Sequence record: PV764603.1
Length of the DNA stretch: 64,000 nt
Direction: 5' to 3' (one strand)
Shown: piece after piece, positions 6,285 to 41,497 of the stretch
Numbering within the stretch: the first letter of the stretch is position 1
Layout of the letters: every line of letters begins with the position of its first letter
Program-made: the position numbers and the translations under genes
Notes under the pieces: model-generated
Database searches by the model: none
Told to the model about the DNA's origin: nothing
What the model saw: the letters and a program-made list of their open reading frames with translations, nothing else

Positions 6285-8570
6285 ATGATTACCCATCAGG
6301 ATACACTGTTCTCCAACATCCTATACGGAAATAATTGGAGTGCAGCTACCTACCAAGCCGCAAATCGGTTCACCATCCAAGGTGACAAGCGAACTTCGTA
6401 TGAGGTAGGTACCCAGGTTCAGATTCTCACGTCCGCCGTAGCTACCATGCAGTACAGCTACGTCAGTGCAGTCACATTCGCATCCAACGTCACTACGGTG
6501 ACAGTCAGCGACGGCCTGTTCGCCTCGGGTCAGAAGATCAATGTTCGTGCGTCGCCGTTTGGCGCCAACAACATGCCCCTCGGCCGACGCTTCAAAGAAA
6601 TCAGCGTGTTCGGTGCGAACGGTCTAACGATCTCGAATGCGAGTCCGAAGTTCACCTTGTTCGTGGAGGGCGTTGGCGCAGGCAAAGTCAACACGTTCAC
6701 TTTCCAGCCGGGCTCTGACGGTATCTCGTTCAAGGTGGGACGTGATGCGATTGGTCTCGATGCCATGCGCATCGACGCCACTTCGACTGCCATCACCAAG
6801 GTGACGTTGTTCTCGCCCCTGACCTTTGGCGCGACGTATACGGGCGCCCTGACTTCGCTGACCGACCTTCTGACGATTGGTCAATACGCACTGACCTATT
6901 CGGCTACGGGTTCTTCGACCGGCAGCAATCGTCTGTATATCTCCGGCCCTAATGGCGGCGAGTTCACCGTTGGTCCTACCAACGATGCTCAGGTATTCCG
7001 TCGTATTCGACTGCGTGCTACTGACGTTGTGGTCGAGAACAATCCCGGCGGTTCCTCGCAAGCAGGCTCGATCTGGCATAGCCTCAACTTCGATCCTGAC
7101 ACCCGTGTTACCAAGGGTCAGAATGGTTCTTGGATGGATTCGGCTTACACTGCGATCAACAACCTTAACAACGCTCAGGGGTATTTCAACCAGTGGGCAT
7201 CGGGCGCCGCACAGGCTCCTGTTGCAGGTTCGACGGGTGTTGTGCAAACCATGCACAGTGCGGGTGGCAACAACTTTAACCCTGTGGCTGGTGCTTCGCT
7301 GGTGCAGACGGCTTATGTCACCAATGGCACCGCACCTGCCCTGTATGTGCGACGCAACGTAGGTGCTTCGGGTTGGTCTGCATGGACTAAGCTGTATACC
7401 CAAGCAGATTTCTCGCTTGGCGATTACGTCAAGATCGCAGGCGGTGATACCATCCAGTCCCCGATCACTGTACGTACTGCCTTGTCCGTTGGCACGACTG
7501 CGGATGCAACGTCCACCCTGAACTTCGGTACCTCGGCCAGTCCCAACGGTCCTGCTGCTACCATTTCTGTTACGGGCGGCGCAGCGACCACGGGTCGTGG
7601 TGCAATGACTATCAACGCGCAGTCCATCGCGCTGCCTGCACTGAACGTCAACGGTACGATGAACGTTTCGGGCGCTGCTTCGATGGCGGGCCCACTGACC
7701 ATCACTACTGGCTCCATACTGCTGGGTAACGGCACGTATGGGGAATCGCGTATTAGCAATACCTTCGACGACTGGTATTTGTATTCCAGTCCTACGGGAC
7801 TTGGCTGGTACAGTATCAGTAAGGGTAGTGCTTTCTCACTGGACAAGAACAGCAAGGCGTTCACGTTCAATGGTGCGGGTACCATCAACGGTCAGACTAC
7901 CATCAATGGTGGTCTGAACGTGGCGAGCGGTAGCGGCATCATCACTTCGGGTAACGTTGTTGGCGCTAACGGCAACTTCTCCAATGACGTGTTTGCCCCG
8001 GGTGCTTTCCGTGGCGCTCGCCTGCACATCTATGCAAACTGTATTGCCTATGGCCAGGGTTTCCTCCCTAGTTGGAACGACTACGGTGATGGCGCAACGG
8101 TCCTGACTAACGCACGCGGCGGTGGTACGGGCGGCTTCAAGTTCCGTCAGATGAACAGTGATGGCGGTGGTCAGGTCTTCCTTGCCTTCATCAACCCGAA
8201 CGGTACCATCGGTTCGGCGTCGGACGAACGCATGAAGGAATTCGGTAAGGTACTCGACCTGTCTGACGCTCTTCGGTTCATCCGTGAGCAGCGAGTCAAG
8301 CACGTCAAGTGGAAGCACACCGGCGAGGAGGATATTGCGTTTGGTGCGCAGAGCATCTTCAAGACCACTAGATTCCTAGCCCACTACGACAAGGGTGCTG
8401 ACTTCTGGCAGCTGTACTACCCGAAGGTAGCTCTGTACCATCACGAAGCTCTCTTCCATATCCTTGAAGTGCAGAACAATCACGAAGCCGACATTCAGAT
8501 TCTGATTCGCAAGAACGAAAATCTGGAAGAGGAAGTGAAGCAGCTGCGCGAACGGTTGGATTCTCTCTAA
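6285..8570 (+). CDS. Tail fibre with C-terminal peptidase S74 intramolecular chaperone
   Basis: Gly/Thr/Asn-rich beta repeats; SDERMKE autocleavage motif, DIAFGAQ, and a C-terminal coiled coil (LEEEVKQLRERL). Confidence 0.88.
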   Translation: MITHQDTLFSNILYGNNWSAATYQAANRFTIQGDKRTSYEVGTQVQILTSAVATMQYSYVSAVTFASNVTTVTVSDGLFASGQKINVRASPFGANNMPLGRRFKEISVFGANGLTISNASPKFTLFVEGVGAGKVNTFTFQPGSDGISFKVGRDAIGLDAMRIDATSTAITKVTLFSPLTFGATYTGALTSLTDLLTIGQYALTYSATGSSTGSNRLYISGPNGGEFTVGPTNDAQVFRRIRLRATDVVVENNPGGSSQAGSIWHSLNFDPDTRVTKGQNGSWMDSAYTAINNLNNAQGYFNQWASGAAQAPVAGSTGVVQTMHSAGGNNFNPVAGASLVQTAYVTNGTAPALYVRRNVGASGWSAWTKLYTQADFSLGDYVKIAGGDTIQSPITVRTALSVGTTADATSTLNFGTSASPNGPAATISVTGGAATTGRGAMTINAQSIALPALNVNGTMNVSGAASMAGPLTITTGSILLGNGTYGESRISNTFDDWYLYSSPTGLGWYSISKGSAFSLDKNSKAFTFNGAGTINGQTTINGGLNVASGSGIITSGNVVGANGNFSNDVFAPGAFRGARLHIYANCIAYGQGFLPSWNDYGDGATVLTNARGGGTGGFKFRQMNSDGGGQVFLAFINPNGTIGSASDERMKEFGKVLDLSDALRFIREQRVKHVKWKHTGEEDIAFGAQSIFKTTRFLAHYDKGADFWQLYYPKVALYHHEALFHILEVQNNHEADIQILIRKNENLEEEVKQLRERLDSL

Positions 8571-8595
8571 GGACATTGGGCACAGGGACGTGCTC
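8569..8595 (+). promoter_or_regulatory. Tandem ANGGA sites with GCAC-AGGGAC-GTGC hairpin (CsrA/RsmA-type site)
   Basis: ACAGGGACGT matches (A/U)CANGGANG(U/A) exactly; a second AAGGAC lies 15 nt upstream. Confidence 0.6.
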
Positions 8596-8612
8596 CTTTT
8601 TAGGTAGAGGCT

Positions 8613-10004
8613 ATGTGGATCACCCCTCAGAATCAAACTCTTGATGACACGTTCGATCCATACTTTCCGGGTACAACTCGGTGGTATGGTTACACCGGCA
8701 TCCTCATCAACAACACGCAAGACACCTACGATCGGTACGCTCCTTTGCAGTATGGCAGGCAAGCTCCATCCACGGCGATCCTTGCGCAGAATCAGGTAGA
8801 CCTGAATCAGATTTACGCAGCCCGAGGTACAGCAGGCTACCTGCAAGGTATCTCTATCCCAAATTGCTACGTGGGCTGCTCTGGCGTTACCATCAACGAT
8901 CTTCTCGCTGCTCGATGCACCATCATCATCAAGAACGACGGTACGTGGCAGCAGTGGTTCTATTCCACCAACTACAAGACGGATAGCCCGGGTGCATATG
9001 CACCTCCTAATCGTGGCATCCCTCGAACCGAAACCAACTTCAGCAACGGACGCATGAACGCCGCCGGTAACTGGGCACAGATTCCGTTCGCTGGTGTGGG
9101 TAACAACTACGAGACTTTCTGCCACGCTCCTTGGGCCCCATACGAAAGCAAGAACCCACCTGATCTAGATTGGGGTACTGCCGATCACTATAATCGGTAT
9201 GATGCTGCACTCATCAACTATATCTGGCACAACTTTAAGGGCCAAGGACAGTTCGGTAGTGCTAGTGATCCATACGTGGTGCAGAACACTACACAGAACC
9301 CCAACGAAGACATTCCTGACGGTCGGGTATACCGCATCGACCGCGACATTCGGTTCACCCTTGGCTTGACTGCACAGGGACGCAACAACGTTCGTTGGAA
9401 CTACGACGACAACGGCGCTCTGTCATGGTACAACCGAGCCAACTTTTCGGTGTACATTCAGACACCCGGTGGTGGTCAGCGTGTAGGTGCCACGTGCTTG
9501 ATGGCCAATGAGATTCGATGGAACGCATGGAATTGGACGGGTGGTAGCGTCGGCGGCGGTGGTGGCGGTGGTGGCGGTGGTTGCGTTGCTGCTACCAGCT
9601 ATGTTGACTTCCAAAAGACCGCAGGCACTGTTGAGGCAGGCGACTACCTCATGGGTATGACGGATGATCTGCAATTTATGGAGCTACACGTCCTGAGTGT
9701 GCGTCGTCAAGTGCAACCGTGTGTCCGACTCTACTCAAAGAGTGGCGTCACCCTTGTGTGCTCAAAGTCCACGCCGCTGACCCTACAGAACGGAGATTGC
9801 GTGCTGGCAGGCGAAGCACGAGCAGGTATCAAGCTTCCGGTACGATTCTTCGCGGCTGATCCTGAGTGGGAAACCATCGTCAAGATCGAGGAGGTTGGCA
9901 ACCGGGAAGTGATGCTCATCAACTGCGGTGGACAGAGCTATGCTGCCGGTGAGTTGCCGGGCCGCTATATCTACACCCACAACAACAACCAGCAGAAGAT
10001 GTGA
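8613..10004 (+). CDS. Fibre-tip adhesin (gp38-like position) with poly-Gly linker and C-terminal Hint (intein-like) domain
   Basis: Directly follows the S74 fibre; 10 Gly then CVAATSYV (Cys324), VRLYSKSGVTLVCS, WETIVKIEEVG.REVMLINCGGQSYAAG and IYTHN. Confidence 0.75.
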   Translation: MWITPQNQTLDDTFDPYFPGTTRWYGYTGILINNTQDTYDRYAPLQYGRQAPSTAILAQNQVDLNQIYAARGTAGYLQGISIPNCYVGCSGVTINDLLAARCTIIIKNDGTWQQWFYSTNYKTDSPGAYAPPNRGIPRTETNFSNGRMNAAGNWAQIPFAGVGNNYETFCHAPWAPYESKNPPDLDWGTADHYNRYDAALINYIWHNFKGQGQFGSASDPYVVQNTTQNPNEDIPDGRVYRIDRDIRFTLGLTAQGRNNVRWNYDDNGALSWYNRANFSVYIQTPGGGQRVGATCLMANEIRWNAWNWTGGSVGGGGGGGGGGCVAATSYVDFQKTAGTVEAGDYLMGMTDDLQFMELHVLSVRRQVQPCVRLYSKSGVTLVCSKSTPLTLQNGDCVLAGEARAGIKLPVRFFAADPEWETIVKIEEVGNREVMLINCGGQSYAAGELPGRYIYTHNNNQQKM

Positions 10005-10423: not shown

Positions 10424-10428
10424 CAGTC

Positions 10429-10466
10429 AATTTTACGTAAGGACATAAGGCTACGGATAGCAGCCT
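10429..10466 (+). promoter_or_regulatory. AATTTTA motif followed by two ANGGAY sites (AAGGAC; GCT-ACGGAT-AGC hairpin)
   Basis: Seen directly in the leader of ORF 10503. Confidence 0.5.
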
Positions 10467-10502
10467 CACATAAAGACACTTCCCAACAAATAAGGAACGA
10501 TC

Positions 10503-11180: not shown

Positions 11181-11183
11181 TTC

Positions 11184-11729: not shown

Positions 11730-11739
11730 AGAGGATGGC

Positions 11740-12465: not shown

Positions 12466-12471
12466 CTAACG

Positions 12472-12500: not shown

Positions 12501-12517
12501 CGTATAGGCCCCTGACT

Positions 12518-12903: not shown

Positions 12904-13245
12904 ATGCCCTTGTGGTTGACTGCATGGTTTGCGAAAATGTGGGCCAAGTGCTCGCAGTATGTCATTGCCGCTGGCTCCATATTGGCGGCAATTGCTGGTA
13001 TCTTCCTGTACGGTCGCTTCAAGGGTAAGTCCGCCGCCGATGCAAAGCATGCGGAGCAGGATGCGAAACGAATTGAGGCTGAAACCAAGATCGTTGAGAA
13101 GATCGACCAAGCTCACGAATCTACCCGTGAGCAGGTCGAGGAAAAAATCGAGAAAATCCCTGCTCCAACTACGGATCCTAACGAGACAGTTAGGGTGGGG
13201 GATGCACCTAAAGATTCGGCCGCAGGCAAATTGAGGGGCTGGTAA
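12904..13245 (+). CDS. Inner-membrane spanin (Rz-like)
   Basis: N-terminal TM (YVIAAGSILAAIAGIFLYG) followed by a charged coiled coil; next to a lipoprotein. Confidence 0.8.
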   Translation: MPLWLTAWFAKMWAKCSQYVIAAGSILAAIAGIFLYGRFKGKSAADAKHAEQDAKRIEAETKIVEKIDQAHESTREQVEEKIEKIPAPTTDPNETVRVGDAPKDSAAGKLRGW

Positions 13246-13472
13246 TGAAAACTCTCCTGATTATCGCCATCGCCTTACTTGCAGGCTGCGCAACTACTCC
13301 ACAAGTGGTGGCTCAAACCGACATTTGCGCTGGCTGGAAGGCCATCAAGGTCAACGAAAACGACGAATTCACGGATGGAACTGCCAAGCAGATTCTAGCG
13401 CACAATTGTCAAGGCGCAGCCTTGAAGTGCTGGGCCTATCCGAGGAATGATCCCCAAATTTGTGAACGCTAA
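13245..13472 (+). CDS. Outer-membrane spanin lipoprotein (Rz1-like)
   Basis: MKTLLIIAIALLAGC lipobox; additional Cys residues; TAATG overlap with the i-spanin. Confidence 0.82.
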   Translation: MKTLLIIAIALLAGCATTPQVVAQTDICAGWKAIKVNENDEFTDGTAKQILAHNCQGAALKCWAYPRNDPQICER

Positions 13473-13481
13473 GAGGTAACA

Positions 13482-15866
13482 ATGCCGCTGCCCACTTCCA
13501 TCCAACCCATCATTGAGAATACTCCGGACATTCTCAAAGCATGTGTTGAAGTCTATCAGTCCATGTCTCTGCTACAGGACCGGGGCTTCATGTTCTTGAA
13601 CGAGCAGATTGAATTGCTCACGTCTACGGGTCAGGTGGCACACGTCACCACTGCGTATGGTACTCAGGTTGAGTTGCCCACGTATCATACTCTGGCAGCC
13701 ACCTCGAACGCCTCTACGGAATTGGTGCAGCAGTTTCAGCGCCAAATCTACGACGTGTTCACTAGCAACAACCCGACGGTAATCATTAGTGACGGTCTTG
13801 GTAACGACACTCAGGTGATCGGCTATCAGACCATGAACGACAAGGTTAACGCTACGTCGGACGTGGCTTCTATCGCCAACACCAACGCGCTCAACGCGCT
13901 GGGTAAGGCCACCGAAGCGCTGAACCGTGTTACCAACTCCGAGCTCAACGCCAACGTGGCTTTGGCGAACGGCACACCACCCACCTATCAGACGCGTTCG
14001 GTTCTCGATACTGTTACGACGATGCAACGCAATAGTATCGCCTACGTGATCGCTGATCCGGTTCCCACCAACAACACCATCTACCAGTACAACGGTACTG
14101 CATGGACTCCTCAGTATGATCGGCTGCTGACCGCCCTAGGTAGTCCGCGTGGCTATCTGGCCCCACTCACGGGCGCTATCTACCGTACCTATCAGAGCAA
14201 GCTAGAATCACTGGTTACTCCTGAAGACGTGGGGGCCAAGGGTGACGGCACTACTGATGACGGTCCCGCCTTCATCGCCGTCGCTGCGAACGGGCGCCTG
14301 ATTGTGCTGTCCCCCAACAAGACCTACCGTATCACCTCCAACGCCACTGTAGGCAGCATCATGCCTAATGGCTCCAAGATTTCCATCGGTCCGGGCGCTA
14401 CCCTGACTTTTGATGGCCTGATCGTGGACGATGCTACGGTTGTGTTTACGGGTGAGGGCAACGCCGTCAGCAGCACTAGCGTCTACAGCGTTGGCTGGTT
14501 CGCAGGTGATAGCTTTAACGCCAAGTGGCTCGCCATGAAGCGTGGTTTCACCCAGCAGGTAGTCAAGTACGTCACGCTGCCGATGCCGCACCGCACCGAT
14601 CCTGCGGCAACTACCGCAGCTTCGGACGGTCAGGCACGTTGGAAGCTTACGGACTCTGTGGTCTTCAACAATACGGAATCTAACCTGATCGTCAATGCGC
14701 TGGGCGAATTCCTTGTGGACCAGTCCGCCTCGCTGTCGGCAGGTGCTTTCATCCTTGGCGAGCTGACTGCCCCCTCCAGCATCAACTTCCCGAACGGCTT
14801 GCGCGTCCTGTGTAACGGTAGTGCAACTTACGGTCTGCGTGTTCGCGGCGGTAGCAGCATCAGTTTTGAGGAACTACTGGTTCTGGATAGTGCCACCAAC
14901 TCCGGTATCCTGTGGGACAACTACAACGGCCCGAGTCACCGAATCAGCTTCGACCGCGTGCGTATCGACGGCTTTGGTGTGGCAGGCGTAACCATCCAAC
15001 CGCAAGGTGGCCCGAGCTACCCGAACCAGTCGCCTCCGATCACTTCGTGTTCGATCAATTCGCTGCAAACGCGAGGCGGTCGTAGCGGCTGCACGAACTT
15101 CGTCAAGATCGCGGGTAACGTGGATGGCCTGACCATCACCAACGTCCTTGAAGATCGTCCGTCGGGTAGCCTGCTGTTCGACTGGAGCGATTCCATGTTC
15201 TCGCTGACTAACACTCAGTACGGCACGATTGGTCGCTCCGGTTTGGAGATTGGTCACATTCAGGCGACCAGCACCCAGCTGCCCATCATCCGTGCGTTCG
15301 ACAGCACTTCCGCTGCTGACCCTGCGAATGGCAAGATCACGTTCTCGGTAGAGCACATCTATCAGGCGTATCAGCAGAACATCGTTCCGGTCATCATGGA
15401 ATACTCGAAGAACTGCACCATCGGACGTATCAACGCAGGACGCCCCACCTCTAGTCAGGAAGTGCTTGTCCGTATCTTCCGCGACTGCGAGGGTATTTCT
15501 CTGACCGGTACACACTACACCGCTGTTCGTAGTCAGGCCCTGCGTACTCAGTTTGACGGACGCTTCGGCATGGTGGACGTGGTGCAGCAGAACTCTGCGA
15601 TCTTCACGGATCTAAACACTGCGGCACTGACGTTCAAGTTTGACCTAATCTGCCTCACCTCCGCGTCTACTTACGCTTCGGGTTGGGCAGGCGCCAACGC
15701 TCTCGATATTCCCACGTCGCTGACCAAGAATATCAACGTTGCCCAGGGTCCGCTGGAAGGAACGACCGGCCCTGAAAGCACCATCAGCATCAGTGCTGCG
15801 GAAAACAAGTTCTTTGTGGAAAACCGAACCGGACAGAATCAGCTCGTTGCGGTTCTCATGTCCTAA
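13482..15866 (+). CDS. Tailspike/depolymerase with pectate-lyase-3-like beta-helix
   Basis: VTPEDVGAKGDGTTDDGPAF...IVLSPNKTYRIT motif followed by beta-helix-like repeats. Confidence 0.82.
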   Translation: MPLPTSIQPIIENTPDILKACVEVYQSMSLLQDRGFMFLNEQIELLTSTGQVAHVTTAYGTQVELPTYHTLAATSNASTELVQQFQRQIYDVFTSNNPTVIISDGLGNDTQVIGYQTMNDKVNATSDVASIANTNALNALGKATEALNRVTNSELNANVALANGTPPTYQTRSVLDTVTTMQRNSIAYVIADPVPTNNTIYQYNGTAWTPQYDRLLTALGSPRGYLAPLTGAIYRTYQSKLESLVTPEDVGAKGDGTTDDGPAFIAVAANGRLIVLSPNKTYRITSNATVGSIMPNGSKISIGPGATLTFDGLIVDDATVVFTGEGNAVSSTSVYSVGWFAGDSFNAKWLAMKRGFTQQVVKYVTLPMPHRTDPAATTAASDGQARWKLTDSVVFNNTESNLIVNALGEFLVDQSASLSAGAFILGELTAPSSINFPNGLRVLCNGSATYGLRVRGGSSISFEELLVLDSATNSGILWDNYNGPSHRISFDRVRIDGFGVAGVTIQPQGGPSYPNQSPPITSCSINSLQTRGGRSGCTNFVKIAGNVDGLTITNVLEDRPSGSLLFDWSDSMFSLTNTQYGTIGRSGLEIGHIQATSTQLPIIRAFDSTSAADPANGKITFSVEHIYQAYQQNIVPVIMEYSKNCTIGRINAGRPTSSQEVLVRIFRDCEGISLTGTHYTAVRSQALRTQFDGRFGMVDVVQQNSAIFTDLNTAALTFKFDLICLTSASTYASGWAGANALDIPTSLTKNINVAQGPLEGTTGPESTISISAAENKFFVENRTGQNQLVAVLMS

Positions 15867-15872
15867 CGTGGT

Positions 15873-15890
15873 GGTCACATGGACGTGACC
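15873..15890 (+). promoter_or_regulatory. GGTCAC-ATGGAC-GTGACC hairpin (CsrA/RsmA-type site)
   Basis: Perfect 6-bp stem; ACATGGACGT matches (A/U)CANGGANG(U/A). Confidence 0.62.
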
Positions 15891-15907
15891 CTTTCTTGAG
15901 GTGCACA

Positions 15908-16051
15908 ATGAAGCTATTGGTATTGATCGGAGTGCTAGCTCTGGCAGGCTGCAACTCGATGCCTACGCCGTCCAAGCCGCTGAACACTGGGGACGAAACG
16001 CAACCTCCTCCGGGTTGTGTGGAACTACGTAAGCAAGGAGGCAAGTGCTAA
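15908..16051 (+). CDS. 47-aa lipoprotein (not in the supplied ORF track)
   Basis: GAGG RBS; MKLLVLIGVLALAGCNSMPTPSKPLNTGDETQPPPGCVELRKQGGKC; lipobox LAGC; stop overlaps the next ATG (TAATG). Confidence 0.75.
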   Translation: MKLLVLIGVLALAGCNSMPTPSKPLNTGDETQPPPGCVELRKQGGKC

Positions 16052-16473
16052 TGGCCCTGTCGGTACAAGATTACACGGCACTGCGACGCATCCACTCCAA
16101 GGCAATGTCTGCCTTCAAGTATGTGTCGGACAAAACCAAATGGGGACTGGTAGAGTATTGGGAACCCGAGGACGTACTGTTCCCCGTAGGTGCTAGGTTT
16201 ACGGGAGATTGCGAAGAATTCGCTAGAGTGTGCATGCAGGAAAGCATCAAGGCCGGTTACAAAGCACGGCTCGTTGCATGCCTTACTGAAGGTGGCGAAG
16301 GCCACTGCATCTGTGAGGTGGCGGATGAGGAAGAAACGGGATCGTTCTTCTTAGACAACCGCAAGACCAACATCGTTACCAAACTGGGATTGACTGGCTA
16401 CAAGTTCTACAGCGTGTCGCCTTGGAATCCCCAATTTAGCGAGACTCGGCCGTGGAGGCTGGTCAAGGAGTAA
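16051..16473 (+). CDS. Transglutaminase-like cysteine protease (BTLCP/peptidase C93, LapG-like)
   Basis: KYVSD..KWG..EYW, GDCEEFA (Cys), EGHCICEV (His), FLDN (Asp) match the BTLCP Cys-His-Asp triad motifs. Confidence 0.85.
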   Translation: MALSVQDYTALRRIHSKAMSAFKYVSDKTKWGLVEYWEPEDVLFPVGARFTGDCEEFARVCMQESIKAGYKARLVACLTEGGEGHCICEVADEEETGSFFLDNRKTNIVTKLGLTGYKFYSVSPWNPQFSETRPWRLVKE

Positions 16474-16695: not shown

Positions 16696-16705
16696 GCCAA
16701 AAGAA

Positions 16706-16733
16706 AAGGGCCACCCCTTTCGGAGCGGCCCTT
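16706..16733. terminator. Hairpin, candidate minus-strand or bidirectional terminator
   Basis: AAGGGCC...GGCCCTT stem preceded by an A-tract (a U-tract on the minus strand); between convergent genes. Confidence 0.55.
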
Positions 16734-16776
16734 ATGTTGTTGGGTTGGACTGCAAGGATGCTAGTGTCCAGGAGTT

Positions 16777-16806
16777 AAGGGGAGCACGATGCTCCCCTTC
16801 TTTTTT
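16777..16806 (+). terminator. Intrinsic terminator
   Basis: AAGGGGAGC-ACGAT-GCTCCCCTT followed by CTTTTTT. Confidence 0.8.
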
Positions 16807-16807: not shown

Positions 16808-17509
16808 TCAGCCCTCGTACTCGTCAGCGTCAACCGGAGACGACTGCTTACGCAGCATCTGGCGTTCAGCCCAGCGGGCCAGCTTATCGAAGTTCTTGAT
16901 CTTGCTGGCTTCCTCGAAGACATAACGGTAGTCGGCCGCAGACAGACGTTCATCGCCACAGTTCTTGATGGACGCGTGCACTGCATCCATGTTCATATCC
17001 TTGGCCTGAACCATGATGTTCAAGATGACCGGATTGATCTGATTGGCGATCACCACGTCGTTCTCTGCATCCGGGTTGCGAATCGGCTTGCGGTTGCGAT
17101 CACCCAGCGCTGCCGGGGTCTTGCCACTGCCACCGTTCTCAATGCCCATCGACGCATTGATGACCTCGTTACGGATGTTCTGAATACGTGCATGCTCCGC
17201 ACGTGCATCGCTGCGCTCCATGAACTTGTTGGCCGCTTCCGGGTCGATGATGAGCAGCAGACCGCTGTTGACCGCACGCTTGAACGGAGCCGAATTGACG
17301 ATCACGTCACGGTCGCCGATTTCAACAAGGTTCTGAGGAATGAAGGAAGCTTCAATCATCAGTCGGTTGTTGTCGTCGATGTGCAGGGACACGCGCGAGC
17401 TATCCGAGTGTGCATTCACCGCCATGCGGTTTACGTTCAGCACCCACAGTTCGTCGTGCTCCGAACGAATGGCGTCCATGATGGTGATGGCGTGGTTTTC
17501 AAGACTCAT
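16808..17509 (-). CDS. Hypothetical protein (233 aa)
   Basis: Phage-like codon usage; overlapped in an operon with two other minus-strand genes; GGAG RBS. Confidence 0.7.
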   Translation of the reverse strand: MSLENHAITIMDAIRSEHDELWVLNVNRMAVNAHSDSSRVSLHIDDNNRLMIEASFIPQNLVEIGDRDVIVNSAPFKRAVNSGLLLIIDPEAANKFMERSDARAEHARIQNIRNEVINASMGIENGGSGKTPAALGDRNRKPIRNPDAENDVVIANQINPVILNIMVQAKDMNMDAVHASIKNCGDERLSAADYRYVFEEASKIKNFDKLARWAERQMLRKQSSPVDADEYEG

Positions 17510-18009
17510 GAGAAATCTCCGATGGGTTTAAGGATTTGATACTCCGCCTTTGTCAGGTTCAATACCCTGCGCAGGCGGTGATTGTGGGCATTGAGGAAAG
17601 CCAAGTCGCCTTCCTCTAACTTTTTGATTCCCGACAGGAATGCCTTCCAGTTCTTTCTAGACAAGGCAGCTATGAACTTGCTGACGGACCATTTCGATTG
17701 GCTAAACCAAGGCGAAGCTAGTTTGTCTCTGCACAGCTGCTCAATGTCATCCGGTAGCACTGTCGTGGCATACGGCACGCGCTCTAGGAATGTTGCATAC
17801 TCATCGAGAATCAGGATGCGGGCTATTCTTAACTTACCTCTCTCCCGAGAGGTACGCAGGGCAGCTAACGTGATGCCCTTGGTGGTTGCAATGAGCTTCG
17901 GGGTAGTAACACCTTTGATGCACATTCCCTGAGCCCAATACATGCAGGAGAAGTTCCCACATGATCCTGTATAAGAAGTACCGATAAGTGGACAGCGAAG
18001 CTTTGTCAC
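17506..18009 (-). CDS. Hypothetical protein with N-terminal Cys cluster (possible Zn-binding)
   Basis: CPLIGTSYTGSCGNFSCMYWAQGMC; 4-nt overlaps at both ends. Confidence 0.6.
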   Translation of the reverse strand: MTKLRCPLIGTSYTGSCGNFSCMYWAQGMCIKGVTTPKLIATTKGITLAALRTSRERGKLRIARILILDEYATFLERVPYATTVLPDDIEQLCRDKLASPWFSQSKWSVSKFIAALSRKNWKAFLSGIKKLEEGDLAFLNAHNHRLRRVLNLTKAEYQILKPIGDFS

Positions 18010-29438: not shown

Positions 29439-29503
29439 TCCTACTTGGAAGGTAGGAGTAGCAACAACATGGATGTTCCACCTACTACTAATGGAGATTC
29501 GCC
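29439..29503 (+). promoter_or_regulatory. GGA-dense leader with AAC-ATGGAT-GTT hairpin (CsrA/RsmA-type site)
   Basis: ACATGGATGT (29467-29476) matches the consensus exactly; four GGA within about 50 nt. Confidence 0.6.
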
Positions 29504-29781: not shown

Positions 29782-30579
29782 ATGTATGTGTTTACCAACA
29801 CCTCAGCTAATCAGATGACGTTCGGCGACCTGACGCTGGCCCCGAACGCCACCACTGAATTCCCTGACGATCGGGTGGCTGCTCTGAGCACCCACAACCT
29901 GAAAGCGCTCAACGATTTTGCCAACGGCAATCCGCTGATCCTGAAGGTCGAGTATCAGGCTTCGGTTCCGCCGGTCACCATCGGTCCTGTATCCGCCGCT
30001 CCTGCCATTTCTACTCCGTTCGGTAACAAACTGATGCAGGCTGCTGATGCAGATGCTGCTAAGGAACTGCTCGGGGAAGGTCAAGGTAGTGGCTATACGT
30101 TGCCTGTCGCTACGGGCTCGGTCCTTGGTGGCGTCAAGATCGGTGCGGGCCTTAGTGCTACCGCCGATGGCACCCTGAGTCGCAGCGCCCTTGTTGCCGG
30201 AGACATTCCAGATTTGGACGCCGCCAAGATCGCCTCCGGCACTCTGGCGGTTGCGCGTTTGGGTACTGGCACTCCAAGTGCTGCTAACGTGCTTTTGGGT
30301 TCGGGCGCTTTTGGCGTACCTCCGACTGCTACTAAGGCAACCGCTCTGGCTACGGGCCGTACCTTCACTCTGAGTGGCGGGGCTTCCGGTACCACCGCCT
30401 CTCCGTTCGATGGCTCTGCTAACGCCACCCTCAACGTTACGCTGGCTACTCCAACAAGTGCTCTCCGTGGCGGTGTCCTCCAGCAGGCCGCCATTGCTGA
30501 CTTGACCGCCGCTCCTACCCAGCAGGATTTCAACGCCCTGCTGGCAGCCCTGCGTGCAGCCTCGGTAATCGCTTCCTGA
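29782..30579 (+). CDS. Head fibre/decoration fibre protein
   Basis: YTLPVAT..VLGGVKIG.GL...ADGTLS, ATKATALATGRTF..SG and C-terminal GGVLQQAAIADL..APTQQDFNALLAALRAA head-fibre motifs. Confidence 0.75.
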   Translation: MYVFTNTSANQMTFGDLTLAPNATTEFPDDRVAALSTHNLKALNDFANGNPLILKVEYQASVPPVTIGPVSAAPAISTPFGNKLMQAADADAAKELLGEGQGSGYTLPVATGSVLGGVKIGAGLSATADGTLSRSALVAGDIPDLDAAKIASGTLAVARLGTGTPSAANVLLGSGAFGVPPTATKATALATGRTFTLSGGASGTTASPFDGSANATLNVTLATPTSALRGGVLQQAAIADLTAAPTQQDFNALLAALRAASVIAS

Positions 30580-30587: not shown

Positions 30588-30603
30588 GGGCCAAGGACGG
30601 CCC
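30588..30603 (+). promoter_or_regulatory. GGGCC-AAGGAC-GGCCC hairpin (CsrA/RsmA-type site)
   Basis: 5-bp stem with CANGGANG core; same 14-mer as 41475-41488. Confidence 0.6.
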
Positions 30604-30746
30604 ACTAGTCGGGTAAACCTTTCAAATTAGCCGGGTAAGGGTGCCTCAAATACGGTACTTGGCAGCTAATTTTACTGTGAAGGCGAGGGCTATTCCTCCG
30701 TGCTTTTCAGGTGCAGGGATTCACCACTTCCTATGGCCTCAACTCA

Positions 30747-34874: not shown

Positions 34875-37352
34875 ATGAGCGTCCTGTTTTCTAACAACGC
34901 ATTGACGGTGTTGGCAGCAGCGGTCGGTCAGAACGAGGTTACCTCGACTATCACTGTAGCAACTGGTGCGGGGCAGCGTTTCGCTGCCCCCACCAACGGT
35001 GACTATCAGGTCATTACGCTCTCCGATCCCCTGTATACCCGATTCGAAATCTGCCATCTAACTGCGCGCACGGGCGATACCCTCACTGTGTTGCGAGGGC
35101 AGGAAGGTACTACCAAGCAAGCGTGGGACGTTGGCGACCGCATTTATGCGTCCTTCACGGCGTCTACGGTCGGTCTCTTCCTGCGCGCTGACACTCCTGC
35201 GTCAATTAGCGGGCTGTGGGACTTCAGTACGCCGCCGCTAATCAATGGTAACAACATTTGGCATTCCGGCAACGTCACGCCTGCTGATCGTACCAAGGCG
35301 CAGACTATCTCCGGGCTCTGGACGTTCACGACGCTGCCCAAGTTCAACGCATTTAATTTCGTGACGACTCAGGGCGCAACTATGGTTGGGCCCTTTTTGC
35401 TTTATGGGTCCCCGACTCAGGACAATGAGGCTGCCACCAAGCTGTATGTGGACAACCTCGCCGCCGGTCTGCACGATAAGGAAGCAGTGGTCGCAGCCAG
35501 TACCGATGCCGGTGGTAATGTCAATATCACCAGCGCCCCGAGTACGCTGGACGGTGTGACTCTTGTGGCAGGAAATCGCATTCTGCTCAAGAATCAGACG
35601 AACAAGACCCAGAATTTGATCTACGTGTTCAACGCAGTTGGCCAGCCCCTTACCGCTGCTTCGGACAGCGATGAGACGGGTGATCTAAAGGCAGGTAGTA
35701 CCGTATTCGTCACAGGCGGTACCGTCAACAAGAACTCGCGTTGGACCGTCATCACCACTGACCCGATCACCATTGGCACCACTCCCATCGAGTGGACTCA
35801 GACGTCGGGTGCTGGCCAGATTCGTTCTGGCCCCGGCATCAAGATCATTGGTGACCAAATCAGCGCAGACGTTCCTTCTGCTGGTGGCCTGACAGTATCG
35901 GTTGCAGATGGCATTGGCCTGTCTGTGATGCAAGACCTAGTGGTCAATACCGGGGCTGCCACCGCTGGAACCACGGGTGCCTCCCTGCGCTACAACAGCA
36001 TCACGGTGGATAAGTTTGGTCGGGTAGTTAACGCTACCAACCTACCTTATGCTCTGACCACTGGCGCAGTGTTTACGGGAGCCCTCACTCGCACTTCGAC
36101 TCCTTCTTCCGGCAACGACATTACCACTGTAGACTTTGTGCAGAATGCCATCGTCTCTATCAGCACCATGCGTCAGCCGGTTGCTGCGGTGGCTACGTCC
36201 AACGTTTCCCTAAGTGGCCTAGGCTTTATTGACGGGTATCAGGTCAAACTCGGCGAGCGTGTTCTCGTTGCAGGACAGACTACGCAGACTGCCAACGGTG
36301 TTTATGTCACCACGGCTAACGCGTGGGTGCGTGCTTCGGACTTTAACAGCACTTCGTCCCTCGCCGCTGGCGTCATGTTCCCGGTTCAGAACGGTACCAC
36401 GTTCAAGAATCAGATATTCATGCTGTCCACTCAGGGCACCATCAGTATCGGTACTACCCCGATCACCTTCCAGCGTGTAACGGGTACGGGCCTGATTAAC
36501 AAGGCTTCGGGTGGTGGCATTGATATTGTCAATGACTCTATCGGTCTCGAAACGCAGTCAGGACTGACCGCAGGCACCTACAACACTGCTCGCGTCACTG
36601 TGAACAGTAAGGGCATTATCACTGGCATCGAGGCAGGCTCCTCGGGCGTGACCTCGTTTAATGGCCGTAGTGGCGTTGTGATGCCCGCTACGAACGATTA
36701 CACCTTCGCTATGTTGGGTGGCAAGCCCACCACCCTCGCAGGCTACGGCATTACCGACCCGGTCATGCTCCGCACTGGCGGCACGATCACTGGTGTTGTG
36801 TCCATTGACTACGGCAATCCAGCTGCAACGGACGGTCCGTACCCACTGCTGTTCATGCGTCTTACCGAAGGTGAGCGCAATACCAACAAGGTTGGTATGA
36901 ACATCATCAAGGAGGATCGCAATTCTTGGGCCATCACTGCTGTAGCTGGTTCGGATGTAGTCAACATCACTAACGGCAGCAAGTTGAATCTGCGGTTCCA
37001 AACCGCAATGGTTAACGACGCTGAGATTCTCACTGACGCCAACTTTGATGCGTGGACTGCCGTTGCGTTCTCTACGGGTAACACCACTCGTAACGCGGTC
37101 GCGCGTGGGTGCTACATGGTAGACACTACCTCCCTTGCTGGTACGCTGGTACTGCCCTCCAATCCTGCTCCGGGCACAGCTGTTCGTGTTCTCGATGCTG
37201 GTGGTACGTTCGGTACCAAGAACCTGACTATCTCGCGCAACAACGCTAGGATCGTAGGCGCGCTGGAAGACTTGGTTTTGGACAAGAATAACGGTGGCGT
37301 CACGCTGGTTTACTACAACGCTGCACGTGGTTGGGTCCCGTTCTTTAGTTGA
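34875..37352 (+). CDS. Long/proximal tail fibre subunit
   Basis: FSNNALTVLAAA...EI...TAR.GDTLTV.RGQEGT N-terminus; two 'V.AA...N..LSG..IDG.....G.R.L...QT...N..YV' repeats; C-terminal gp34-like VDT......LP..P..G module. Confidence 0.8.
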   Translation: MSVLFSNNALTVLAAAVGQNEVTSTITVATGAGQRFAAPTNGDYQVITLSDPLYTRFEICHLTARTGDTLTVLRGQEGTTKQAWDVGDRIYASFTASTVGLFLRADTPASISGLWDFSTPPLINGNNIWHSGNVTPADRTKAQTISGLWTFTTLPKFNAFNFVTTQGATMVGPFLLYGSPTQDNEAATKLYVDNLAAGLHDKEAVVAASTDAGGNVNITSAPSTLDGVTLVAGNRILLKNQTNKTQNLIYVFNAVGQPLTAASDSDETGDLKAGSTVFVTGGTVNKNSRWTVITTDPITIGTTPIEWTQTSGAGQIRSGPGIKIIGDQISADVPSAGGLTVSVADGIGLSVMQDLVVNTGAATAGTTGASLRYNSITVDKFGRVVNATNLPYALTTGAVFTGALTRTSTPSSGNDITTVDFVQNAIVSISTMRQPVAAVATSNVSLSGLGFIDGYQVKLGERVLVAGQTTQTANGVYVTTANAWVRASDFNSTSSLAAGVMFPVQNGTTFKNQIFMLSTQGTISIGTTPITFQRVTGTGLINKASGGGIDIVNDSIGLETQSGLTAGTYNTARVTVNSKGIITGIEAGSSGVTSFNGRSGVVMPATNDYTFAMLGGKPTTLAGYGITDPVMLRTGGTITGVVSIDYGNPAATDGPYPLLFMRLTEGERNTNKVGMNIIKEDRNSWAITAVAGSDVVNITNGSKLNLRFQTAMVNDAEILTDANFDAWTAVAFSTGNTTRNAVARGCYMVDTTSLAGTLVLPSNPAPGTAVRVLDAGGTFGTKNLTISRNNARIVGALEDLVLDKNNGGVTLVYYNAARGWVPFFS

Positions 37353-37357
37353 TTCAC

Positions 37358-37390
37358 AGGCAGGTCCACCACGGGCCTGCCTTTCCTTTG
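37358..37390 (+). terminator. Probable terminator/attenuator
   Basis: AGGCAGGTCC-ACCAC-GGGCCTGCCT followed by TTCCTTTG. Confidence 0.55.
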
Positions 37391-37402
37391 GTGGACTATC
37401 CA

Positions 37403-39340: not shown

Positions 39341-39341
39341 C

Positions 39342-41468
39342 ATGACGATTCTCCAGACTCTGTATCCCATCCCCGATAATGTTCCACGTCTGGACGCAAC
39401 TGGCGTGCAGACTTTTGCCAACACGGTTCGTTTCGGTCGAGTGCTAGCAGGAACTAGCGTGGCGGAAGAATCGGGCTTCGGCCTAATCACCACCAACGCC
39501 AAGGTCACAGGCTATCTTAACGTAGCCTTAGCCGCCACACTGACCAGCACGTCTAACGTGTTCGGTGGCTTCTCGGTCGCAGGTAACGCAATCTTTGGTG
39601 GCAGCAGCTTGCAGATCGTTGGTGATGGCAACATTTATCTGACCTTCCGCACTACCTCGAACCAAACGGACACTCAGTTAATTACGGACCGGGGTGCTAA
39701 GGGTTTCATCATCCGTAATTGGGTGACTCTTGGTACTGGTTCGTACACCGACTTCTCATTGAATGCGGCAACGGGTGCTCTCAAGTGGGGCGCGCAGGAT
39801 ATTTACCACTCGGGTACCTTTAACTGGAAAACCTTCGCGGTCAAAGATGATCGAAACCGCTTCTCCATTCTAGACCTAGCCTCTTACGTTAGTTGGGGTA
39901 CTCTCCGATTCCTTGACCCTGCTGACCTGTCAGCCACTGGCCTTCGCTATTACGTAACTACCGATACTACCTCGTGGGCTTTGAACACTGCGAATGATGA
40001 TGGGAACTGGCGACGCACTCGTTTTCGCGTTCCCCGAGATAGTGCCTCACCTGTGCAAATCGACGGCGGAGCTGCTTGGTTCGCTGGGAATCTTCCGTCT
40101 CCTGCTGATACGACCAAGGCTGCCATCATTGAAAGCAGCAGCTTCGCTTGGGAATTCCGCGCTGCTCCTGTACCCCAGGAAGTTAACAGTTGGCAGTGGG
40201 GCCCCTTCGTACTGCGAGGTTATGACTCCGCGGGCAATAACGTGCGTTCGTTTGCACGACGGGCGGAGGCGGGTACGGATGCGTCTTCCATCGCTACGGG
40301 TCTTCGGAGTCAGCTAGGTGGTGTCAATCGTGCATGGATTGAGTGGTATCTCAATTCCTTCCGTATCTGTGGTGCTGATGGTACGATTTCGGCTTCTTTT
40401 AGCGACTCTGCCATCTGGCTACAGAAGCCGCTTACTTTCAGTTCTACTGCGCTGTTCAACGGCGTGGCCACCTTCTCCTCCGTCATAAGTTCACGCACCG
40501 GCACTCCTAATACTCAAATGATTTTCCACTCGATCGGGTGGAATAATGGTGTGCAGCGTTGGGCGCAGGTGATGGAAGCGACGGGTGCTTATGTGTGGTA
40601 CTGCTACAATGCCACTGGCGGTAATCCTACTTCTGTGTTGTCGATGACTAACCCCGCCAACGGGCTCGGGGGCAATAACCCCGGCATCGGCGTGGCAGGT
40701 TCGATCTATGTAACCCAAGGCATCATTGCGCCTAACTGGGGCTTCACTACCAACGATGCCAACAAGGCGTCGTTCATCGCTACCGGTAGTTACGGTGGTG
40801 GTTTCATGTGTCAAGATAACGCAGGTGCTGGTATCTACTACGGAGGTATGTATGCTGCAAGCGGCTGGGTCGGTATTGGCCTAACCGCTGCCAACTCGGT
40901 TGGCCTTAACAAGATTCTACGACTTACGCAAGAACAGTACATGACGGTACAGACTGAAGGTGGCTTCGCCGCCCGAGGTGGCTCCGCTGTCATGGTTGTA
41001 GAGGAGCGCAGTAGCACCAACGTGCAGTTCCATATGTACGCTACAGGTGGTGCGTGGCGTGTTTGGGATAACGTTACCGGTGCCGACAACCTCACTTGCT
41101 ATCGGACTACTGGTGACTTGTACATCCGTAGTTGGGGTTACGCTGCCAACTTTGCCATCAACTCAGATCGTAGAATCAAGACGTGGATTTCTGATCTGGA
41201 CCCCGAGGAAGAACTGGACAAGGTGGTGACGCTGGTTCCACGCCTGTACCTCAAGGACAACAAGCTGGAATCTGGCGTGTACGCGCAGGACGTGCAGGAA
41301 CGGTGGGCCCACATGGTTACCGTGAGCGAGTCAAATCCCTATGGCATTGACGGACTCCTGACTGTGGCCCACACCATGCTACACGCTCCACTGGTTGCGT
41401 CCATCCAAGCCTTGCACGCTCGCATCGAAAAGCTGCAAGCCCGACTGCAAGAGCTTGAACCCCGATAA
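39342..41468 (+). CDS. Distal tail fibre with S74 chaperone (variant B)
   Basis: Same first 16 aa as variant A; NSDRRIK, ESGVYAQDV and a coiled-coil end. Confidence 0.85.
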   Translation: MTILQTLYPIPDNVPRLDATGVQTFANTVRFGRVLAGTSVAEESGFGLITTNAKVTGYLNVALAATLTSTSNVFGGFSVAGNAIFGGSSLQIVGDGNIYLTFRTTSNQTDTQLITDRGAKGFIIRNWVTLGTGSYTDFSLNAATGALKWGAQDIYHSGTFNWKTFAVKDDRNRFSILDLASYVSWGTLRFLDPADLSATGLRYYVTTDTTSWALNTANDDGNWRRTRFRVPRDSASPVQIDGGAAWFAGNLPSPADTTKAAIIESSSFAWEFRAAPVPQEVNSWQWGPFVLRGYDSAGNNVRSFARRAEAGTDASSIATGLRSQLGGVNRAWIEWYLNSFRICGADGTISASFSDSAIWLQKPLTFSSTALFNGVATFSSVISSRTGTPNTQMIFHSIGWNNGVQRWAQVMEATGAYVWYCYNATGGNPTSVLSMTNPANGLGGNNPGIGVAGSIYVTQGIIAPNWGFTTNDANKASFIATGSYGGGFMCQDNAGAGIYYGGMYAASGWVGIGLTAANSVGLNKILRLTQEQYMTVQTEGGFAARGGSAVMVVEERSSTNVQFHMYATGGAWRVWDNVTGADNLTCYRTTGDLYIRSWGYAANFAINSDRRIKTWISDLDPEEELDKVVTLVPRLYLKDNKLESGVYAQDVQERWAHMVTVSESNPYGIDGLLTVAHTMLHAPLVASIQALHARIEKLQARLQELEPR

Positions 41469-41497
41469 GGATACGGCCAAGGACGGCCTCAATTTTA
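41467..41497 (+). promoter_or_regulatory. Tandem AAGGAT plus GGCC-AAGGAC-GGCC hairpin, followed by AATTTTA
   Basis: Seen directly in the leader of ORF 41522. Confidence 0.58.

Follow-up and report, generated by a model that had tools for sequence, protein, structure and literature searches.

High-affinity CsrA/RsmA/RsmE sites consist of an ANGGAX hexaloop placed directly on a C-G-closed stem, with N and X looping out in the RsmE–RNA structures (Duss et al., 2014, PMC4005645). A CsrA-repressed mRNA usually carries at least two GGA sites, including one that covers the Shine-Dalgarno sequence, and the sponges CsrB, RsmY, RsmZ and Xanthomonas RsmU (PMC7694677) gather many hairpins on one small RNA. 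CsrA homologues are also carried by phages and plasmids (Campa et al., 2021, PMC8450108), among them the plasmid CsrA/RsmA homologue RsmQ (PMC9928087) and the CsrA-family protein gp28 of phage PTXU04 (Adler et al., 2025, PMC11879866); these reports treat effects on the host, for instance on its CRISPR-Cas systems and motility, and call a role in the phage life cycle untested (PMC8450108; PMC9928087; PMC11879866). Like those elements, the jumbo Xanthomonas phage PhiXhv-16 (genome 229 kb; PV764603.1) encodes a regulator close to bacterial CsrA; unlike them, it displays conserved candidate cis-targets on its own mRNAs, the csrA transcript included. Our literature search found no published description of conserved candidate CsrA cis-targets on a phage's own mRNAs.

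The window analysed is the terminal 64 kb of this genome. An earlier sequence-only reading had located six CANGGAYG octamers in plus-strand spacers and proposed that they mark a family of CsrA/RsmA-like hairpins; all six are confirmed in annotated spacers (8583, 15878, 16753, 29468, 30592 and 41478). We scanned the whole genome for the published consensus, an ANGGAN hexaloop on a stem of 4 bp or more that ends in a C-G closing pair. The 128 same-strand spacers yielded five such hairpins and the antisense strand of the spacers none, whereas 2000 dinucleotide shuffles averaged 0.12 and never gave more than 2, which bears out the supposed enrichment. ANGGAY loops likewise account for 5 of 165 hexaloop hairpins in sense spacers versus 20 of 9287 in coding sequence (either strand). 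A covariance model (R1) built without the csrA-adjacent hairpin retrieved that hairpin at 23.3 bits, the next genomic match scoring 13 bits. The family in PhiXhv-16 comprises six hairpins, four in the window and two outside it (Table 1), which begin 6–10 nt past a stop codon and lie 17–40 nt ahead of the next start (143 nt at one site); it is far beyond chance. Their context fold energies are not better than those of shuffles, and an Rfam scan of the whole PhiXhv-16 genome matched nothing except one tRNA.

Table 1. Hairpin family members and further candidate sites in PhiXhv-16 (window positions unless marked as record positions).
Position	Strand	Element	R1	In MFE	Assessment or location
8578..8595	+	GGGCAC-AGGGAC-GTGCTC, then CTTTTT	23.7 bits	yes	strong
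10448..10466	+	irregular GGCUA...CAGCC structure with GGA (first read as GCT-ACGGAT-AGC, 3-bp stem)	no match		weak variant, membership doubtful
15873..15890	+	GGTCAC-ATGGAC-GTGACC, then CTTTCTT	23.3 bits		strong
16746..16770	+	GC-AAGGAT-GC inside TGGAC/GTCCA	no match		unsupported member, 2-bp inner stem
29466..29477	+	AAC-ATGGAT-GTT	no match	no	unsupported member, 3-bp stem
30588..30603	+	GGGCC-AAGGAC-GGCCC	27.6 bits (top match)	yes	strong
30710..30725	+	GGTGC-AGGGAT-TCACC	no match		variant with loop-adjacent mismatch, membership doubtful
41475..41488	+	GGCC-AAGGAC-GGCC	22.5 bits	yes	strong
record 69010-69023					between ribonucleotide-reductase small-subunit gene and primase gene
record 127178-127193	-		found by R1		10 nt past stop of phage csrA

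In each of the four strong hairpins a short G+C stem (4 bp or longer) that ends in a C-G pair carries an A-N-G-G-A-Y hexaloop, and the element begins 6–8 nt past a stop codon. The first starts 7 nt past the stop of a 761-aa gene (6285–8570) and ends 17 nt ahead of ATG 8613. At 15873 the distances are 6 nt from the stop of a tail-spike-like gene (13482–15866) and 17 nt to ATG 15908, which opens the gene for a 47-aa spanin-like lipoprotein; in the MFE of its context this hairpin gives way to a competing pairing with coding sequence upstream of it. The hairpin at 30588 begins 8 nt past the stop of a head-fibre-like gene (29782–30579), upstream of the head–tail connector gene, and that at 41475 lies 6 nt past the stop of a tail-fibre gene (39342–41468; Peptidase_S74 C-terminus) and 33 nt ahead of ATG 41522. 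The position after fibre or spike genes, as first proposed, holds for three of these four sites; the gene at 6285–8570 is without a family match.

Eight hairpins had been listed in the sequence-only reading, of which these four are real and the other four are weak. The 10448 site retains GGA motifs but no conserved hairpin in orthologous spacers. The 30710 variant belongs to the 5′ leader of the connector gene, which actually starts at about 30747, and is common only to the 86% relative L007, within an insert of roughly 100 nt. At 16746, in a 3′ region between two strong terminators, the proposed hairpin is absent from the MFE, in which the GGA is partly paired, and the energy is not below that of shuffles, and the region at 29466 pairs with the start of the next gene. 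A second ANGGAY 12–15 nt upstream does exist at 8569, 10439 and 41467, each time as a TAA stop codon followed by GGAY; the TAAGGAY is missing from the relatives' orthologous spacers, so that this arrangement is lineage-specific rather than conserved. Fold prediction pairs the copy at 8569 with the T-tract.

We compared PhiXhv-16 with seven metagenomic relatives (50–86% protein identity) and found hairpins at the same syntenic places, with stems changed and pairing kept, as would be expected of the conserved, covarying elements first supposed. Past the roughly 760-aa gene, stems of three unrelated sequences bear the loops AGGGAC, ATGGAC and ACGGAC (orthologues of 8578 with entirely different stems: L015:9970-9985, L016:9967-9984). 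Counterparts of the 15873 hairpin occur at L016:19116-19138 (7-nt loop ACGGAAC) and L015:18516-18531, and orthologues of the 41475 hairpin at L009:8602-8617 (GGGCC/GGCCC) and L010:20926-20939 (GGGC/GCCC, a compensatory change). The connector-upstream hairpin, present in six of seven phages, is the sole invariant island of an otherwise unalignable spacer (six phages, 62–100% connector identity); because its stem (GGCC) is invariant, this site alone lacks covariation. In an alignment of 15 hairpins, pairing is 100% at the four inner stem positions, a count inflated by the stem filter with which members were selected; at three of the four, both partners have changed, and covariation scores 0.467 versus 0.149 in shuffles. 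The A, G, G and A of the loop are invariant and only N and X vary, X being a pyrimidine at every site but one; the closing pair is C-G in 14 of 15. The analysis shows that the elements exist and are non-random, strand-specific and conserved with covarying stems.

Chance matches, Shine-Dalgarno-like AGGA sequences or a protein-binding palindrome at the DNA level are refuted for practical purposes as sources of this pattern, and we regard them as extremely improbable. The spacers are indeed GGA-rich owing to their ribosome-binding sites, AAGGA can base-pair with the 16S rRNA 3′ end, and the GGCC...GGCC of the connector site is a fixed inverted repeat. However, chance is countered by the excess over shuffles; the hairpins end 17–40 nt or more before starts whose genes each have their own ribosome-binding site, and in 7 of the 15 aligned hairpins a C, G or T at N disrupts Shine-Dalgarno pairing, whereas the first A never varies. 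The half-sites are wholly different between sites, and the asymmetric loop is sense-oriented in each of the 18 family members, two of which belong to gene blocks on the minus strand.

The positions that vary in the loop, N and X, are the very bases looped out in the RsmE–RNA structures, and the likeness to the CsrA/RsmA consensus noted at the outset extends to a point-for-point agreement with the published high-affinity CsrA/RsmE site. The C-G closing pair and A-N-G-G-A-X hexaloop are shared with the hcnA RBS stem-loop, whose loop is identical to the family loop ACGGAU, and with RsmZ SL2 (PMC4005645), which serves as an RsmA-binding control and is resembled by family GC stems with AAGGAU. The penultimate pair differs, being C-G, A-U or G-C in the phage and U-A in the hcnA/RsmZ-type sites. 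Moreover, the phage sites are single and intercistronic, just past stops, neither over a ribosome-binding site nor clustered in a sponge: the downstream ribosome-binding sites have no conserved second GGA and no GGA over the Shine-Dalgarno sequence, unlike the usual CsrA-repressed mRNA. As in the Csr/Rsm sponges, the loop-displayed GGA could titrate CsrA if the carrier RNA were abundant, but the phage has one hairpin per spacer over 140 kb of mRNA. Since the hairpins share the published high-affinity element, we propose, with moderate confidence, that they act in cis on phage mRNAs as sites where a CsrA-family protein binds.

A csrA gene elsewhere in the genome, which the sequence-only reading had thought worth seeking, is encoded by PhiXhv-16 outside the window, with the sixth hairpin 3′ of it. 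Its product is a bona fide CsrA (Pfam PF02599, 66.9 bits against a cutoff of 27, E=1.5e-18) that aligns to solved CsrA/RsmE chains (E about 1e-15) and keeps the RNA-contacting residues equivalent to Thr5, Arg6, Gln29, Arg44 and Glu46; CsrA is rare among phages (77 of 50,697 records). The anticipated CsrA-containing host is also correct: it is a gammaproteobacterium with RsmA, and RsmA of the genus Xanthomonas acts via GGA motifs. A different reader of the loops, be it another phage or host RNA-binding protein or an endoribonuclease (antitermination factors of the boxB/N kind and mRNA-processing enzymes would be examples), with the CsrA likeness coincidental, appears unlikely. A conserved loop on free stems demands some loop reader without specifying which; the sites are single rather than paired, a search of the hairpin-bearing metagenomic relatives yielded no demonstrable csrA gene, and most of the roughly 330 phage genes are without assigned function. 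No hairpin family of this kind occurs in two unrelated Vibrio phages that carry csrA. Set against such a factor are the agreement with the CsrA site in every defined feature (hexaloop, invariant AGGA, free N/X, C-G closing), the matching protein encoded by the phage itself and the hairpin adjoining its gene; as to a boxB/N-like factor, the boxB loops of lambdoid nut sites are GNRA-like pentaloops, which the A-N-GGA-X loops are not.

Other hairpins are known between phage cistrons, namely intrinsic terminators and attenuators, T7 RNase III sites and lambda boxB, and the family resembles these elements, which set relative expression, in being small, structured and intercistronic. T7 RNase III sites are long duplexes and terminators or attenuators are defined by stem stability and a U-tract, whereas what defines the phage family is its fixed A-N-GGA-X loop, the stem being short and variable. 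The hairpins could act as weak intrinsic terminators, attenuators or 3′-end stabilisers with a ligand-free loop, setting the ratio of upstream to downstream cistrons, because a T-rich tract (at least five T within the next 10 nt) follows 8 of 18, the csrA-adjacent hairpin included. All start 6–14 nt past a stop codon, a scan for terminator-like structures accepts those at 8578 and 15873, and the 69010 hairpin lies directly ahead of a promoter-like CCTGTAAATA motif, as do the genome's long-stem terminators elsewhere. We nevertheless hold this to be quite improbable: a terminator needs no fixed loop, yet four loop bases are invariant while stems vary and flanking proteins are 50–86% identical; 10 of 18 have no T-tract; and the family (stems of 4–7 bp, -4 to -13 kcal/mol) is of another class than the evident PhiXhv-16 terminators (7–12 bp stems, tetraloops, -12 to -23 kcal/mol), whose stability 4-bp stems at -6 kcal/mol do not approach. 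A dual role, with CsrA acting on a weak terminator, may also apply.

Every hairpin is transcribed within a polycistronic mRNA and displays the hexaloop on a C-G-closed G+C stem; if the hairpins are CsrA-family sites, they would be bound by phage CsrA, host RsmA or both. The most likely consequence, we think, would be that binding controls what becomes of the cistrons on either side, via mRNA stability, read-through of weak terminators or access to the downstream start; the hairpin on the csrA transcript would afford feedback, and abundant late mRNAs may also titrate free CsrA. The stoichiometry tuning, distributed sponge and biofilm/motility rewiring first suggested for these hairpins are conjecture. 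The phage's own csrA together with six conserved hairpins suggests that PhiXhv-16 regulates its own mRNAs through a CsrA circuit of its own, an arrangement of which we found no earlier description. The CANGGAYG octamer is itself over-represented in the window, with 38 copies on the two strands together versus 21.1 ± 4.8 in shuffles (0 of 100 reaching 38); 6 of the 23 plus-strand copies fall inside spacers, which make up roughly 3% of the window.

Between the genes of PhiXhv-16 we recovered six members of a family of short intercistronic RNA hairpins, each presenting an ANGGAX hexaloop on a C-G closing pair (table below). The window matches bases 165155-229154 of the record of this 229,154-bp jumbo phage of X. 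hortorum pv. vitians at 100% identity, and carries baseplate, tail-fibre, lysis, head-fibre and connector genes plus a replication block, almost throughout on the plus strand. The phage is under development as a biocontrol agent against lettuce leaf spot, and the paper describing it makes no mention of CsrA, hairpins, promoters or terminators. We analyzed the whole record as six separate, unjoined pieces, for which sense-strand gene calling per piece gave 339 ORFs (330 are annotated) and about 8 kb of spacer. The six CANGGAYG octamers from which the sequence-only reading set out are indeed all on the plus strand and all within annotated spacers; the octamer occurs 38 times on both strands of the window against 21.1 +/- 4.8 in shuffles, and 6 of its 23 plus-strand copies fall in spacer, which makes up about 3% of the window. 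That reading had listed eight hairpin sites, of which four (8578, 15873, 30588 and 41475) form clean hairpins that start 6-8 nt 3' of the stop codon of the upstream gene. The other four (10450, 16746, 29466 and 30710) are weak, with 2-3 bp stems or loop mismatches, lie outside the minimum-free-energy (MFE) folds, give no match to the covariance model described below, and are doubtful or unsupported as family members.

Hairpin family members and promoter-like motif copies in PhiXhv-16; plain coordinates are window positions, R1 is the covariance model of the family, and L003, L004 and L005 are record pieces, of which L003 counts from record base 1 and L005 from 100 kb on
Feature	Position	Strand	Context	Source
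GGGCAC-AGGGAC-GTGCTC	8578-8595	+		raw sequence, R1 match
GGTCAC-ATGGAC-GTGACC	15873-15890	+		raw sequence, R1 match
GGGCC-AAGGAC-GGCCC	30588-30603	+		raw sequence, R1 match
GGCC-AAGGAC-GGCC	41475-41488	+		raw sequence, R1 match
GGCC-AAGGAT-GGCC	record 69010-69023, outside window		between ribonucleotide-reductase small-subunit and primase genes	pattern scan, R1
GGGCC-ACGGAG-GGCCC, then T-rich tract	record 127178, outside window	minus (sense)	10 nt past csrA TGA	R1
YCCTGTAAAYA	L003:6597, 11757, 26248, 36040, 43207			
YCCTGTAAAYA	L004:615, 7942, 19025, 30315(-), 35928(-)			
YCCTGTAAAYA	L005:2019(-), 15987(-)			

Among hexaloop hairpins whose stem has 4 bp or more, ANGGAY loops made up 5 of 165 in sense spacers, as against 12 of 4287 in sense coding sequence, 8 of 5000 in antisense coding sequence and 0 of 226 in antisense spacers. 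The enrichment that the sequence-only reading had proposed holds genome-wide: a scan with the literature consensus (ANGGAN hexaloop closed by C-G on a stem of 4 bp or more) found 5 hairpins in 128 same-strand spacers against a mean of 0.12 in 2000 dinucleotide-preserving shuffles (maximum 2; Poisson tail about 2e-7), and 0 on the antisense strand. One of these five falls outside the window. R1 was derived from 15 hairpins that came from eight phages; across all 229 kb it scored the five known sites at 22.5-27.6 bits and added a new site at 23.3 bits, with the next best hit at 13 bits. Pattern scans had missed this sixth site because a TTG start extends the next ORF across the 51-nt spacer that follows csrA. 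Taken together, the six hairpins begin 6-10 nt after a stop codon and lie 17, 17, 24, 33, 40 and 143 nt from the next start; they follow fibre, spike and head-fibre genes or precede the connector and primase genes, and one is on the csrA message. The MFE fold contains the hairpin at 8578, 30588, 41475 and the csrA-adjacent site, and the prediction places the 15873 hairpin in competition with an alternative pairing. The spacer contexts have no significant thermodynamic z-scores; the case for the family is one of motif, position and conservation, not of stability.

For the conservation analysis, relatives of the connector protein, encoded downstream of the 30588 hairpin, were sought in several collections. 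GenBank phages included only relatives of 98-100% or 24-26% identity (the latter in phiRSL1, BCSR5 and Motura), useless for covariation, and IMG/VR had none. A large protein database yielded relatives at 86, 72, 68, 63, 62 and 57% identity, as well as relatives of the 8613-10004 protein, encoded downstream of the 8578 hairpin, at 57 and 50%; the contigs of both sets were retrieved. Two further candidates (L093 and L094) were discarded as unrelated low-GC phages with only an N-terminal domain in common with the gene at 8613. Covariation in related phages, which the sequence-only reading had suggested looking for, is borne out: hairpins occupy orthologous sites with stems that differ yet pair. 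Upstream of the connector gene the hairpin is found in 6 of 7 phages, the 57% relative having no spacer there, and GGCC-A-N-GGA-Y-GGCC is the sole invariant island in otherwise unalignable surroundings. After a gene of ~760 aa, three phages have the stems GGGCAC/GTGCTC, GGCCT/GGGCC and AGGCGC/GCGCCT with the loops AGGGAC, ATGGAC and ACGGAC, respectively, and at the tail-fibre-gene site the stems read GGCC/GGCC, GGGCC/GGCCC and GGGC/GCCC. At the site after a spike-like gene of ~800 aa, the relative L016 has a 7-nt loop, ACGGAAC, and a second relative an AAGGAT hairpin immediately before the next gene; a further member in L016 lies 3' of a minus-strand gene, on the sense strand of that gene.

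In the alignment of 15 hairpins the four inner pairs are 100% paired, three of them with changes on both sides, and the covariation score reaches 0.467 (shuffles: 0.149 +/- 0.044) and drops to 0.15 or less once pairing partners are slid. Since the aligned members were ascertained through a stem filter, the orthologous-site comparisons are the stronger evidence. The element is a conserved, sense-strand, structured RNA with a loop-specific constraint; chance, a Shine-Dalgarno-like sequence or a DNA site is a highly improbable account of a family whose 18 members (six in PhiXhv-16 and twelve in relatives) all lie on the sense strand. The family is not general to phages with csrA, because two unrelated csrA-carrying Vibrio phages have no such hairpins (best R1 score 17 bits). 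When csrA was sought in the relatives with hairpins, a protein search returned only the phage's own cluster and generic bacterial CsrA, and the 243-kb contig of the relative L013 was not among the contigs that a metagenome scan retrieved. A full-length-looking CsrA homologue (P0081) was set aside as a bacterial csrA that adjoins alaS. Two of the relatives encode a protein with an ADP-ribosyltransferase-type Pfam match, PF03496 (L010:6719-7855 and, weakly, L015:13881-14720), which has no obvious window counterpart at the same place.

All six hairpins of PhiXhv-16 and the twelve of the relatives have GGA within the loop. Across the 15 aligned hairpins loop positions 1, 3, 4 and 5 (A9, G11, G12 and A13) are invariant, and the only variable loop columns are position 2 (N), which takes A, C, G and T, and position 6 (X), which is C or T; X is G at the csrA site (ACGGAG) and A in the 7-nt loop of L016. 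The closing pair is C-G in 14 of the 15 and U-G in one, and again C-G at the csrA-adjacent and L016 minus-strand sites, while the stems of all 18 members span 4-7 bp (-4.3 to -13.0 kcal/mol). The high-affinity site of CsrA/RsmE is an ANGGAX hexaloop directly on a stem; the stem-loops studied are C-G closed, the hcnA loop being ACGGAU, and in the complex the protein reads all loop bases other than N and X, which are looped out (Duss et al., 2014; PMC4005645). The phage family agrees with this site on every point, and its varying positions are exactly N and X. SL2 of RsmZ, a standard positive control for RsmA binding, has an AAGGAU hexaloop on a G+C stem.

The arrangement of the sites differs from that of the known Csr/Rsm targets. 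Classic repressed mRNAs have a second GGA within reach of the dimer, usually over the Shine-Dalgarno sequence of the regulated gene, an arrangement absent here: no conserved second GGA site accompanies the hairpins, and the downstream ribosome-binding sites read AGAGG, GAGG or GAGAG, with no GGA, the exception being the ribosome-binding region of csrA itself (CACGGAG). The second ANGGAY that the sequence-only reading had noted upstream of some sites is present at 8569, 10439 and 41467, where it consists of the TAA stop plus GGAY, and is not retained in the orthologous spacers; the copy at 8569 is predicted to pair with a T-tract. Whereas Csr/Rsm sponge RNAs gather several GGA hairpins in one short RNA, the phage sites are single and dispersed, and Rfam scans of all 229 kb at gathering thresholds found one tRNA and no sponge RNA of the Csr type. 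The densest non-coding cluster of the motif in the genome, six ANGGA copies in 150 nt (AGGGAA/AGGGAC repeats), lies outside the window at record 35090-35277, where a pyrimidine-rich half precedes a purine-rich one; this candidate sponge-like RNA folds no better than shuffles and has no Rfam match.

A loop under such constraint might also be read by another protein. The nut site of lambda offers a model in boxB, a 5-bp stem with a GNRA-like pentaloop that has boxA nearby and an arginine-rich N-like protein. The phage loop, by contrast, reads as an ANGGAX hexaloop and is not GNRA-like, and the cell that makes the RNA has CsrA-family proteins, from the phage csrA and from the RsmA documented in the host genus; a different loop-reading protein is unlikely. 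The csrA gene, for which the sequence-only reading had recommended a search of the rest of the genome, was found outside the window, annotated as 'translational regulator CsrA' on the minus strand at record 127204-127440. Its product matches Pfam CsrA (E=1.5e-18, 66.9 bits, cutoff 27), aligns with the solved CsrA, RsmA and RsmE chains at E of about 1e-15 with a 3-residue insertion in one loop, and retains Arg44, a residue important in CsrA. It is further identical at the positions of Thr5, Arg6, Gln29 and Glu46, the RNA contacts named by Duss et al. (2014; PMC4005645). PhiXhv-16 thus encodes a CsrA with canonical RNA-contact residues and bears one of the elements on the csrA transcript. The gene after csrA is annotated from TTG 127164; ATG 127152 (minus strand), 12 nt further on and preceded by a GGAGG Shine-Dalgarno sequence, is more likely its true start, which gives the 51-nt spacer.

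A Rho-independent terminator pairs a stable G+C-rich stem with an immediately adjoining U-tract. In eight of the 18 family hairpins the 10 nt that follow contain 5 T or more, as weak terminators or 3' stabilisers might. The evident terminators of this genome form a separate class, with 7-12 bp stems, UUCG- or GNRA-like tetraloops, T-tracts and -12 to -23 kcal/mol, and a terminator or stabiliser role, which would leave the fixed loop unexplained, is unlikely. From the match of the loops to the CsrA/RsmE site we infer that they are bound by a protein of the CsrA family, be it phage CsrA, host RsmA or both. The bound protein could shield the intercistronic region from RNases or expose it (RsmA of Xanthomonas stabilises the hrpG leader), modulate weak termination where a T-tract follows, or control access to the next start; abundant late mRNA could in addition titrate free CsrA, with feedback via the csrA-adjacent site. 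Given the known footprint of the ribosome, termination of translation 6-10 nt upstream would open the hairpin, so that occupancy may be linked to whether the upstream gene is being translated.

CsrA homologues carried by phages and plasmids are already known, published ideas on their action concern host targets, and a 2025 functional-genomics paper describes the role of phage CsrA in the phage life cycle as untested to date; our literature search turned up no description of phage mRNAs with conserved cis-sites of the CsrA type. What is new here is a concrete set of conserved candidate cis-targets on the phage's own transcripts, that of csrA included, by which the question of what a phage does with CsrA becomes addressable through binding and transcript maps. 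We tentatively consider a virus-borne, self-contained Csr circuit, in which the phage brings both CsrA and conserved candidate high-affinity cis-sites on its own mRNAs. If so, late and replication genes would be timed or balanced post-transcriptionally whatever the state of host RsmA, with abundant late mRNA in turn acting as a buffer for free CsrA and RsmA. The high-affinity type of ANGGAX hairpin may be usable singly, between cistrons and just past stop codons, a placement in single post-stop spacers that differs from the classic occlusion of ribosome-binding sites by CsrA. Given the biocontrol use of PhiXhv-16, its gene regulation and interplay with host RsmA are also of practical interest.

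Several further elements were observed in the same spacers or in comparable ones. At 1225-1240, upstream of a baseplate gene, GGGCC-AAAATA-GGCCC has the stem of the 30588 hairpin and a loop without GGA; GGA is present in the corresponding spacers of L016 (AAGGATTA loop) and L015 (GCAAGGAT), and the hairpin at 1225 may be a decayed or divergent family member. The connector gene is annotated from GTG 30711, and the alignment of six relatives puts the conserved N-terminus at an ATG near 30747, making 30711-30746 probably leader rather than coding sequence. Between the 30588 hairpin and the connector start, ~100 nt (30604-30730) are common only to the 86% relative (L007:500-630) and missing in relatives of 72% identity or less, whose spacers measure 45-65 nt; this stretch could be a promoter or small RNA. 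A 47-aa ORF (15908-16051) directly 3' of the 15873 hairpin, separate from the annotated spanin pair (12904-13472), combines a lipoprotein-like signal peptide with a weak match to Rz-like spanins (PHROG E=4e-4). The first late structural operon, outside the window, has a leader (record 142496-142726) with the mutually exclusive hairpins GGGTC-AGGATC-GACCC, GACCC-AGGA-GGGTC and GGGTC-AGAATG-GGTCC, two with GGA in the loop; this leader looks switch-like and could be a CsrA-responsive element of different shape.

At 16703-16799, where the plus-strand late block adjoins the minus-strand genes 16808-19244, strong terminator hairpins of 12 bp and 10 bp stand opposed, both with a T-run. Each is placed past the other, so that transcripts converging here would share ~90 nt. 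A promoter-like motif, YCCTGTAAAYA, likened to the T4 late promoter TATAAATA, has 12 copies in record 1-150 kb, all in sense orientation and most of them 15-35 nt upstream of the starts of genes such as DnaA, primase and other early or middle genes. It often follows a terminator hairpin and is missing from the late structural block, and a variant, CCTGTAAACG, lies upstream of the DNA polymerase gene (window 51189-51196). PhiXhv-16 also encodes a sigma factor (record 15075-16091).
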